Source of the DNA: Vitrella brassicaformis CCMP3155
Taxonomy: Eukaryota > Protista > Chromerida
Assembly: GCA_001179505.1 (NCBI GenBank)
Contig: CDMY01000424.1
Coordinates: forward strand, 1 to 64,000
Length of the DNA: 64,000 bases
Direction of reading: 5' to 3'
Numbering within the stretch: position 1 is the stretch's first letter; each line of letters begins with the position of its first letter. A program made the position numbers and the translations under genes. This document shows, one piece after another, positions 15,621 through 24,580 of this stretch. The notes under the pieces were generated by a model. It saw only the letters and a program-made list of their open reading frames with translations. It was not told the DNA's origin and ran no database searches.

Positions 15621-16847
15621 CTACAACTGAAGGACACAGCAGACAGAGACAAGGGACGGTGAAGCCCTGACCGGCAGCACAGCACATGAGCGTACGTCCC
15701 CACCTTTGCATGGTGTGGCTTGCTGCCCCTCGCCTTGCGGGCGTCAGAGAGTGAAGGGAAGTCCTCCATATCGATATCCTCCTTCTCTTGGCCGTGGCCG
15801 CTGGTGCCCCATGCTGGCTTGGGGGGTGCGTGCGGGTGGTCGGGTGAGGGCCGATAGCGCTGCACCGTGGCCCTTGCCGGCCGCTGATTGTTCCTGGGTC
15901 CATGCTGGTGGTGGTGCATCCTGTTGTCGTTGTTGTTGTTGTTGTTCTTGGTGGTGGTGGTGGTGGTGGTTTTGTTCCGGTTGTTCTTGTTGGGGCCGGA
16001 TGGCGCAGACGGGGCGGCTGAGACCTTGACCTCGCCGACCTGCACACACAGACAACACAGACACATGCACAGGGAGCTCCGGATGAAGCCACTGATGCAT
16101 CTGCTGACCGGCGTGGCATTGGGGCGCAGAATGGTGTCGAAGATGGCCTGCTGCCGACGTCCCCTGGTCTGTGTCTTGTGCATCAGCCACTGCCACAGCT
16201 GCCCCACCGTCCACCCATCCAGCGCCCTCACCACATCGGCCAGCTGAGCAACGCGTCGGTCGTCCATGGGGTAGTAGTGCATGAGCACCCCTGCCTGGCT
16301 GGATGCCATCCACTGGATGAGGGCCTTCAGCTGCGGATCGCCGCCAAACACACCGCAGCCCCAATTCCCTGACACAAATCAACACATGGGAGAAACAGTG
16401 TGTAAACCATGGGGTCTTCTGTTGGTGGTGCCATCGACTCACCTGTTGCGAGTGCCTGGGTGTGTCCATCACCGCCGCCATGACTGAGGGCGGCATAGAC
16501 CTTGTTGGTCTCGCGCAGGATGGCGGCCAGGGAGTACTGATCGACGTGTCGGTCGGGCGTCGAGAAGTCGATGGCATCGAAGGCCACGACATCGCACACC
16601 AACGAGCTGTCGTCGGTGCTCGTTGCTGGCCCGGCGCACCGAAATGAGTCCTTATACCCCTAAATGAGCCATCACCAGCACTCATAGGCTAAGTGGAAAT
16701 GCGTGAACGCATCGTATACCTGATAGTTGGTGAATTTCCTTGTTCCCCTGATGACGGCCGCGTCGGTGTCGTTGAGTGGCGGGATGAGAAGCCGTGCGAC
16801 GAGCAGCTCGGGCGATATGGCGAAGCGAATCTCCTCCTGAACACTCC

Positions 16848-16878
<31 letters not shown>

Positions 16879-17773
16879 GATGGCCATTGCCTCCACGCCC
16901 TCCCTCTCTGTCTGTGTGTGTCTGCTGTGCACCTGATGCGAGTACGCCCCCGCCGAGCACTCTGTTGGCGAAGTCGGCCTGCAGGCCCGGCGAACACTCT
17001 ATGCGGTCAGCACATCCCATCACTGCCACGGGCAGCAGAGGGGCTGTCGAGCTGCTCCAGAAGGACGCCCCTGGAGAAGGCGTCAACGACAACCGCTCGA
17101 ATGTGATGACGCGGTTCAAGTGATGACTGTTCTCTTCCACGGCGGTGGCCATCGAGCTGAGGTACAGAATGAAGCACTTCATCTTGGCCACTGCACTAGG
17201 GGCCTTGAGAGGGAAGAGGCGGCGGAAGTTGATGGTGCTGCTGTGGTGGCCCGACCAGTGTGTGCCGTTGTCCTCGTGATACAGGCAGAGGAAGCCCATA
17301 GCGACGAGGAGGAAGCACCGATAGGCCGACAGCTGGGCCCGGTGCCTCTGGCCATCCAGCGTGTGGATGCATTGCAGAAGGGACGGGGAGTGCTCTCGCA
17401 CATGCTGACACATCACCCGCACCGTACGCGACAGGAATGCCTCTCGGTGGTTGGGTGGCAGCTGACTGAGAGCGACGCGGAGGCCATCGAGGCGCGGTGC
17501 CGTCTTCGTGCTTGGACTCATAATGAGGCTGAGGTCATTCAGGAGCGACAGCAGGTCCCCAGCATGGGATAAACCATCATTCTCTGTCTTCCTCAGCCGC
17601 GCGGTGATGGTTTGCCATCTCTTCTCATCGCGGAAGGGGAAAGGAATGCAACCGGCCTTGCTGTCCGTCATGTTCACACATCCCATTTCCACACAAGGAG
17701 GAGGGAAAAGGGCTCTGGCGGATATAAGCTCGCAGTTGAGGCGATCGGAATAGGAATATCGCGACTGACTCAT
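15621..17773 (-). CDS. PARG: Poly(ADP-ribose) glycohydrolase, copy 1
   Basis: QADFANRVLGGGVLASG|SVQEEIRF (GGG-x-QEE catalytic motif), NYQGYKDSF, AFDAIDF, RETNK, ATGNWGCGVFGGDPQLK; Asn/Thr-rich low-complexity C-terminus. Confidence 0.93.
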
Positions 17774-22414: not shown

Positions 22415-22603
22415 GGCGGCGCGCAGCTGCGTGTGCTGTCAGGCCTGCCTGTGCTCTCTGTCTCCTCTTTGCCTTCGCCCGAAATTAGCTCGCACCGCAA
22501 TCTTAGCTCGCACTTTTTTTTCCGTCGAGTTTTTCCTATTCCTGCGAAAAGAGGAGGATGCTCATCGTCGTGTCAGGATCCAGGCGTAACGATTTTTGAC
22601 GTC

Positions 22604-24580
22604 ATGTTCCCCAGATCCAGCCTCTTTCACTATTCCCCGTTTGCAACACCACAGATATCGATGCCCACCAGTATTCCCGTGCCGGTCGGCCGCGAGTGGC
22701 ATGACATCAAGCAGGTGCTCTCAAAGATCACAGGCGGCGTGAGAGACCCCCTGCAGCTCATGGTCGTGCTCAAGGAGGTCCAGCTGTGCAAGCGAGCGGT
22801 GTCGGGATCCCCTCATTCATTCAGTGGCGTTCCGCTGCTCTTCAAAGGCATTCCACCCGACGTCACAGCGCACTTCCTCAACCACACCCTGCCCATTATG
22901 GCCAGCGAGCTGATCCGCAGCAACCTCTCGGCAGGAGATTTGCCACACTACATCAGCCCCGCGTCGCAGCACAGGGCTGTGGCGCTCACGGCCCATCAGG
23001 TCTTCCTGCTGCTGTCGGCGGCCTTCTTTGGCATGTATGGGCCCACCCCCTTCGACACATGCAGCCGCGACATCAGCGGAGCGTCCATCAACTTCGGGCC
23101 GCTGTTCGACTCGGTGCACAAGTCCACGGCAGCGGCCAAGCTCCACTGCTTCATCCTCTACTTCATCGCCATGGCCGCCGCCGTCGAGAGATCAGATGAG
23201 CGACAGCTGCGGCGCAACATCATCTTCAAGAGGCTGGACGGCGGGCGGCATGCCACAGCCGATCAGTGGGCACAGTCGACAGCCCGTCTGCTGCCCGTGA
23301 GGGTGATGGGATGTGCCGACCGCATAGAGTGTTCGCCGGGCCTGCAGGCCGACTTCGCCAACAGAGTGCTCGGCGGGGGAGTACTCGCATCAGGTGCACA
23401 ACAGACACACACACAGAGGGAGGGAGGAAGGTCGTGCAGGCAATGGCCATCTCTGTGTGTGTGTGTGTGTGTGTGTGCAGGGAGTGTTCAGGAGGAGATT
23501 CGCTTTGCCATATCGCCCGAGCTGCTCGTCGCACGGCTTATCATCCCGCCACTCAACGACACCGACGCCGCCGTCATCACTGGGACCAAACAATTCGCTT
23601 TTTATTCCGGGTAAGGATACCACACAGACACTCCTCCCTGTCCACCTGTTGATTTAATTCAGGTACGGTCGGTCATTCTGTTGTGTGGGTGCGTGTGGGA
23701 GCGAGCGGCAGAGTGCTGTGGTGGCACTCGATGCCATCGACTTCAGAGGCCGCTCCCCGTGGACACAATACTCGGTGGCCTCGCTGCTCCGAGAGACCAA
23801 CAAGGCCTTCTCGGCTGTGAGCGAGCTCGAATTGAAGAGCCTGCCATTCGCGACAGGTGAGTGGCATGGCCATGCCTCTCCTTTGGGTGATTGGTTTGTT
23901 GCTCGGCTGATTTGTGTCAGGGAATTGGGGCTGCGGTGTCTTTGGCGGCGATCCGCAGCTGAAGGCCCTCATCCAGTGGATGGCATCCAGCCAGGCAGGG
24001 GTGCTCATGCACTACTACCCCTTCGATGACAAGCGCATCAACGGCCTGGCCGTCGTGTGCCGTCTCATAGTGGCGGCGGGGTGGAGTGTGGGCGACCTCT
24101 GGCGGTTCATCAGCCGCGATGAGGACAACCTCCACCGATACGGCGTCTTCAAGTGCATCATGTACCACCTCCAGCACCATATGCAGGTGACTCTCTCTGT
24201 CTGCCTGTCTGGCAAGCACCGACCCAAGCTTTGGCGTGTGAATGTGTCCTTTCAGAGTTTGAGTCATGGTGTCGGTGTGCATGATCGTCGTCGCGTGGGG
24301 GCTGCATCGCACTATGGTGCTCTGCCATCATCCCTGGCACCCAATGACAGCTCCGTCACCAAGTGTAGTACCGCGACGGCCTTCGACAGAGACATGGAGA
24401 GGACGGTGGACCAGTGCAAACAAGAGGTGAGTCGGCAGGACACCGAGACACGTGGATGTCATCGATTCGATGCCGTGAAATGTGTGAGTCATTCAGATGA
24501 GCGGTGCGGGTGCTGAGACACGTGAGCAGCCAGAGGATCATGACGATGAGGAGGAGGAACTGATCTCTGGCTTCGACTGA
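22604..24580 (+). CDS. PARG: Poly(ADP-ribose) glycohydrolase, copy 2
   Basis: ADFANRVLGGGVLASG|SVQEEIRF, FYSG|YGRSF, ALDAIDF, RETNKAF, FATG|NWGCGVFGGDPQLK; acidic C-terminal exon. Confidence 0.93.

Follow-up and report, generated by a model that had tools for sequence, protein, structure and literature searches.

Genes for enzymes that attach ADP-ribose (writers) and for enzymes that remove it (erasers) are well known as linked pairs in bacteria and phages, but in eukaryotes they are usually scattered and have been studied singly. Vitrella brassicaformis is an alga-like protist and kin of the Apicomplexa, and we describe here a locus on contig C424 (CDMY01000424.1) of strain CCMP3155 at which a compact ADP-ribosyltransferase (ART) gene lies beside a gene for a poly(ADP-ribose) glycohydrolase (PARG). 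The stretch of DNA analyzed, hereafter the window, comprises positions 1-64000 of that contig, from an assembly of 72.7 Mb in 1064 contigs, and its genes have short GT-AG introns and a GC content of about 58%. The order along the window is PARG1 on the minus strand (coding region 15617..17773), a spacer of 90 bp between two start codons (17774..17863), the ART gene on the plus strand (17864..18477), an assembly gap that appears as a run of N (18478..18777), a fatty-acid desaturase gene on the minus strand, a 246-bp spacer, and a second glycohydrolase gene, PARG2, on the plus strand (22661..24580). The PARG1 ATG occupies 17771-17773 on the reverse strand and the ART ATG begins at 17864, which bears out the head-to-head arrangement with 90 bp between ATGs that a sequence-only reading of this DNA had described; the distance could reach about 190 bp if PARG1 begins at a downstream Met. 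The spacer, as read from the sequence, is presumed to hold a shared bidirectional promoter together with the 5' untranslated regions (UTRs) of both genes.

Both glycohydrolases resemble canonical eukaryotic PARG (PF20811 + PF05028), with which they share the helical and macro-fold domains. PARG1 was modeled as five exons and 622 codons from the ATG at 17773 (17773-16933, 16847-16720, 16659-16443, 16368-16109, and 16039-15617 including the stop), with borders read against PARG2, and its exon translations score 49.3 bits on PARG_cat_N and 59-78 bits on PARG_cat_C. PARG2 has six exons and scores 43.7 and 62 bits on the same Pfam domains, and an in-frame upstream ATG near 22605 is a possible alternative start. 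The GGG-X7-QEE signature is found in both as GGGVLASG-SVQEE, where it is split by an intron and hence depends on the splice model, and the GNWGCGVFGGD diphosphate-binding loop can be read in the translations of both. PARG1 and PARG2 therefore look catalytically intact as far as their motifs can tell, in agreement with the earlier mention of a second intact PARG. They differ from the canonical situation in that about 12 PARG loci occupy one genome, in their inverted arrangement with patchy sequence conversion, and in the low-complexity tail of PARG1.

Public contigs were compared with the locus over 15621-21600, using DNA runs X2 and X4 and RNA runs X1 and X8, the last two recognized as RNA from contigs in which five CT..AC introns of the neighboring minus-strand gene are spliced out. 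An X1 contig covers 15722-15915 and 16106-16371 of PARG1 with zero mismatches, and between these two blocks the genome has 69 nt more than the contig. This fits the last PARG1 intron (16108-16040, 69 nt), and PARG1 is therefore transcribed. At 16366 an X1 contig matches the shared GNWGCG exon and extends upstream into sequence coding for "...GLPFATG", which is like the last part of PARG2 exon 3 but agrees with neither of the two window PARGs; the contig may come from an unassembled third paralog or another strain, or may be chimeric. The C-terminal tail of PARG1 (15880-16010, minus strand) carries long Thr/Asn/His runs (TTTTTTT, NNNNNN, HHH) derived from simple repeats, a stretch that the read mapping skips.

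PARG2 sits 4-5 kb from the PARG1-ART pair and is inverted relative to PARG1. Across the N-terminal domain the two proteins are 37% identical, roughly the maximal distance between any two Vitrella PARGs, and they appear to be old paralogs. Outside two short tracts their DNA identity is 40-65%. Tract A (16732..17050, paired with 23276-23596 of PARG2) is 92-98% identical, as seen in inverted repeats I1, I2, and I4 and in a sliding identity profile, and spans the GGG-X7-QEE catalytic loop and one intron with a (CA)n run. Tract B (16259..16381, paired with 23908-24030) is 97% identical by inverted repeat I3 and the same profile, and spans the GNWGCGVFGGD loop. A genome-wide comparison returned no further above-chance copy of tract A, and the tract B region of other PARG paralogs is only 76-89% identical, with none above 89%. 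The two tracts thus seem private to PARG1 and PARG2, and the pattern points to patchy gene conversion between old inverted paralogs, placed exactly on the catalytic loops. Inverted identical tracts of this kind could also lead to inversion of the intervening 6-kb segment.

The ART gene consists of three exons and about 170 codons (17864-18084, 18143-18252, and 18321-18477), with a GC-AG intron 2. A hidden Markov model (HMM) of the compact ART family, built without the window's own rows, scores the exons at 51.5, 23.2, and 38.6 bits, for a sum of about 113. The public model of this gene, P0009 (120 aa), joins exon 2 to an acceptor that lies about 28 nt beyond the one preferred here, in the region 18253-18350; it ends after nine codons and drops the exon that bears the catalytic Glu. 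With an acceptor at 18320, exon 3 codes instead for 52 residues, which share 64% identity with the closest full-length homolog, P0002, and keep the family-invariant Cys, Trp, Ser-Gln, Gly, and Glu, and for this reason the exon set starting at 18321 was preferred. The catalytic triad is then formed by His in YHGT, Tyr in FYVT, and the second Glu in REET. In an alignment of 29 family sequences these fall in the columns of a conserved His and of two nearly invariant residues, Y73 and E151 in P0002 numbering.

The reading frame is still open where it enters the gap, after "...REETALRSVAQIKRTLKR", and full-length paralogs and homologs terminate 3-10 residues past that point, so that by homology the ART would lack just some 5-10 codons. 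Closing the gap at 18478-18777, which the sequence-only reading had proposed, did not succeed with public contigs: those of DNA runs X2 and X4 stop at 18477 and 18463, reach about 34 and 24 nt into the gap, and resume at 18778, and none bridges it. Nothing resembling the family C terminus lies on the far side, and the RNA contig of the convergent desaturase ends at 18825, near the gap. Because homologs end so soon, because nothing family-like follows, and because the desaturase RNA reaches 18825, we concluded from these alignments that the catalytic domain is essentially complete and that the gap probably hides only the last ART codons, the stop, and the 3' UTR.

The ART was searched in Pfam exon by exon, and the exons taken singly, each a short query of 36-73 aa, have no Pfam match. 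P0002 served as a proxy for the fold. A word search followed by a profile search collected 32 relatives, many of which carry PF00644, from Vitrella, Durusdinium, and Breviolum (Symbiodiniaceae), MMETSP transcripts, and marine metagenomes, suggesting that the protein belongs to a small ART family in chromerids, dinoflagellates, and marine metagenomes. Close paralogs lie at C409, C561, and C646 in the same genome, and the single-exon domain of the C409 copy (L004) passes PF00644 with 34.9 bits against a cut-off of 26.7. Members are built from an N-terminal DnaJ-type CxxCxGxG zinc knuckle, a minimal PARP core of about 130 residues, and a Cys/His insert (C..H...C.C) after the central strand. The P0002 model, predicted with the family alignment, has a mean predicted local distance difference test score of 91. 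Its top 50 matches in the PDB are all catalytic domains of PARP1, PARP2, PARP4, or tankyrase-2 (TNKS2), the best being PARP2, PARP4, and tankyrase-2, with a Foldseek probability of 1.0 and a template modeling (TM) score by query of about 0.5. By sequence the PDB gave only weak matches, to PARP16 and Tpt1. The window protein is predicted to be a minimal H-Y-E PARP-fold ART. The PARP catalytic domain (PF00644; PARP2, PARP4, tankyrase 2, PARP16) and P0002 have the same fold and an HG[ST]...Y...E triad, but the Vitrella protein lacks helical regulatory, WGR, BRCT, and ankyrin domains and has the knuckle and the Cys/His insert. We rejected the idea that the insert is the zinc site of tankyrases, since the insert comes after the central strand and the tankyrase site before it.

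The sequence-only reading was thus right to see a PARP-like protein with an H-Y-E triad and without PARP1-type regulatory domains, the whole being a bare knuckle, core, and insert. Its label "Gig2-like" fared less well. Gig2 proteins of fish are virus-induced small PARP-like proteins, similar in size and likewise a bare PARP-like domain. For P0002 the best ESM-Atlas match, at TM 0.65/0.64 over 128 residues with a root mean square deviation of 2.7, is a chordate cluster of 175 aa labeled "PARP catalytic domain". We suspect this cluster to be the Gig2 family; the tool gives it no such name. Gig2 has been placed among PARP and diphtheria-toxin-like ARTs (PMC5512222). No named Gig2 or chordate protein is among the 32 profile hits, so the likeness is one of shape, beside a separate weak feature-based lead, and no sequence-level link was found.

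Two of the compact copies have features of their own. A degenerate copy at C314:79053-79205 (L014:1342-1707), nearest to the C561 paralog, has lost the Cys-rich insert through an internal deletion. The copy at C646:4886-8041 (L002:1715-2416) corresponds to JGI model P0005 (267 aa), in which an upstream open reading frame adds an N-terminal extension of about 110 residues; no recognised domain was found in it.

Recurrence of the linkage had been set beforehand as a test, and it was found both elsewhere in the genome and once on an unrelated contig. We surveyed about 10 kb on either side of every other PARG locus, comparing six-frame translations with HMMs for the compact ART family and for a second, "YHQT" mini-ART type. 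The genome holds about 20 ART-like and about 12 PARG loci, and six of the latter, the window pair included, have an ART within 2.5 kb. The five others lie at C718:54-56k, C718:171-174k, C718:238-240k, and C238:97-99.5k, all head-to-head, and at C718:229-232k, in tandem, with 0.5-2.5 kb between the genes. About half of the Vitrella PARG genes therefore sit beside a small ART, and the window pair belongs to that expansion. Like the window pair, the C718/C238 pairs combine a PARG with a small H-Y-E ART close by, and most of them are head-to-head, but they differ in ART family (YHQT...DEYIVF), in PARG clade, and in a GC..H..H.C..C..H finger that the C718/C238 ARTs share with the C718 PARG partners. 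This finger is absent from window positions 1-40000; neither window PARG has it, and the window ART bears the DnaJ-like knuckle instead. The PARG-rich contig C718 also has, at C718:103557-103895 (L016:1471-1809), a solitary mini-ART of 107 codons that lacks a zinc finger and has Ile at the catalytic Glu position (H-Y-I); a PARG lies 7.5 kb away.

A tree of the PARG N-terminal domain groups the seven PARGs of C718 and C238 as a single tight and recent clade (support 100/99), while PARG1, PARG2, and a C406 copy are distant, on a branch of length 2.08. The window ART, with its score of about 113 bits on the compact-family HMM, reaches only about 3 bits when scored with HMMs of the mini-PARPs that are linked to PARGs. 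Given the tree and these scores, the window pair differs from the other five in both its ART family and its PARG clade. Either it arose as an independent second pairing, or it is very old and has been conserved; both options favor selection for linkage. A third adjacency is found on L048, an unrelated GC-rich eukaryotic contig from Logan (GC 64%). Its features (1854-4254) are a DHHC-ankyrin palmitoyltransferase gene, the ART P0010, and, after 218 bp, a PARG-like gene with a PARG_cat_N domain (82 bits) and, after it, a BRCT match too weak to reach the Pfam cut-off. In limited literature searches we came across no description of such ART-PARG pairs.

The ART-PARG pairing at this locus is probably functional, to judge from the five similar pairs elsewhere in the genome. 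In the reading that we tentatively favor, and to which we give nearly an even chance, the locus is a writer-eraser gene pair within a Vitrella-specific expansion, in which a mini-PARP and its glycohydrolase are co-expressed to give a self-limiting signal. The writer would be a protein of about 170 aa with a DnaJ-like knuckle and a minimal H-Y-E PARP fold, and the eraser a canonical PARG, the two being transcribed divergently with 90-190 bp between them. Gene conversion may keep the catalytic motifs of the second, older PARG paralog the same as those of PARG1. The common promoter would co-express an otherwise unregulated mini-PARP with its glycohydrolase; the ART could then put ADP-ribose, probably in short chains, on targets or on itself, and PARG would quickly remove it. 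The outcome would be a self-limiting signal that spares the NAD+ pool, most likely in a stress or defense response. We infer the co-regulation from the shared spacer, and the action of PARG1 on the ART product and the role in stress or defense are likewise deductions from the arrangement. Canonical PARGs cut poly(ADP-ribose) chains and not the protein-proximal unit, and since they cut chains only, the pairing makes most sense if mini-PARPs build short chains.

Several observations weigh against this scheme, and we take them up with the explanations that they would favor. The first of these explanations is that the two genes are coincidental neighbors with unrelated substrates, a compact ART having landed beside a PARG in a compact genome rich in head-to-head genes; we regard this as unlikely, though it deserves serious weight. 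The desaturase gene (18825..22414, minus strand), recognized by Pfam FA_desaturase on one exon and by spliced RNA contigs from X1 and X8, is unrelated to ADP-ribosylation, yet it lies equally near PARG2, head-to-head with 246 bp between the ATGs. It is convergent with the ART, has a coding region at 20252-22414 and an unusually long, CA-rich 3' UTR of about 1.4 kb down to 18825, and is well expressed in both RNA runs (five introns confirmed by CT..AC joints, and an unbroken piece at 18825-20427). One more unrelated head-to-head gene pair occurs within the window. Such pairs are common here, as the sequence-only reading had cautioned, and because the PARG2-desaturase geometry is the same as that of ART-PARG1, the argument from adjacency alone is weakened.

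The survey also has a side that suits coincidence. No PARG, Macro, or ARH gene was detected on the contigs of the four other compact ART loci (C409, C561, C646, C314), so that the question raised beforehand, whether ART paralogs adjoin PARG or macrodomain genes, has a divided answer: the five mini-PARP pairs do, and the four closest compact paralogs do not. Likewise, of six environmental contigs that carry family members and have 1-3 kb of flank, five show no PARG. Because the PARGs of C718 and C238 cluster so closely, the remaining five Vitrella pairs are best read as copies of a single unit, recent duplicates that count as one event. Against coincidence, our own estimate from locus counts and the 72.7-Mb assembly gives an expectation of only about 0.007 ART loci within 1 kb of a PARG, where one is seen in the window, and of roughly 0.002-0.007 for a chance adjacency of this kind, and a second pairing with different family members, together with a third on an unrelated contig, is hard to obtain by chance.

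The second explanation, that the window ART is a decaying or silent copy, a drifting paralog left unexpressed or mis-spliced to a truncated, inactive protein, seems to us rather improbable. It draws on the expression data, in which no RNA contig from X1 or X8 lies over the ART, the protein search yielded no transcript-derived protein of it, and the 5' half of PARG1 has no RNA contig in the two runs either. Moreover, the window ART departs at 5 of the 29 invariant positions of the seven-sequence alignment A3 (G71A, A81S, G144, V153A, and an insertion at PPCPNG), which makes it the most divergent intact copy; the P0009 splice would truncate it, and the compact copy at C314 is clearly degenerate. 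However, all three exon frames are open, the H, Y, and E of the triad, the three invariant Cys, and the Trp are retained, and exon 3 keeps its identity to P0002. As the RNA data are assembled contigs, from which weakly expressed genes drop out, the lack of ART RNA is absence of evidence rather than evidence of silence.

The writer-eraser scheme also takes for granted, at its key step, that the window ART makes chains that PARG can cleave, and this assumption bears on the comparison with known conflict systems. In DarT/DarG, SirTM-macrodomain operons, and Tre1/Tri1, an ART gene adjoins a hydrolase gene as it does here, a likeness of logic only. Those prokaryotic pairs are co-transcribed operons whose macrodomain or ARH erasers act on mono-ADP-ribose, whereas the Vitrella pair is eukaryotic and divergent, has a PARG as its eraser, and has an ART without DarT homology. 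That the pair is a toxin-antidote or immunity-type conflict module, the stronger form of the sequence-only reading, with a harmful free ART and PARG1 as its dedicated neutralizer in the manner of DarT/DarG or Tre1/Tri1, would suit the tight, recurring, many-times copied pairing typical of conflict systems and an ART devoid of any regulatory domain, but we consider it very improbable, because canonical PARGs leave the first protein-bound ADP-ribose and so fit antidote logic poorly, because Pfam on the paralog domain gave no DarT or other toxin-ART family above threshold (ART-PolyVal and DUF3990 fell below their cut-offs), because no mobile-element features were seen around the ART-PARG1 pair, and because the genes are divergent rather than co-transcribed.

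Two small ART families separately linked to two PARG clades, with a family member linked to a PARG in at least one other GC-rich eukaryote, might mean that alveolate-like protists carry selected, copy-prone writer-eraser cassettes, a eukaryotic counterpart of DarTG and SirTM-macrodomain systems for stress responses or defense against parasites; this wider idea is speculative, and we would not expect it to hold as it stands. At the level of the locus itself, the analysis corrects the public gene model by restoring the exon with the catalytic Glu, and it presents two PARG paralogs whose catalytic motifs would be the precise target of gene conversion. Vitrella appears to keep minimal, regulator-free PARPs beside PARGs in two separate versions, and it may thus offer a natural system for studying how a bare PARP domain is restrained, whether mini-PARPs build chains at all, and whether a defense arms race lies behind their expansion.

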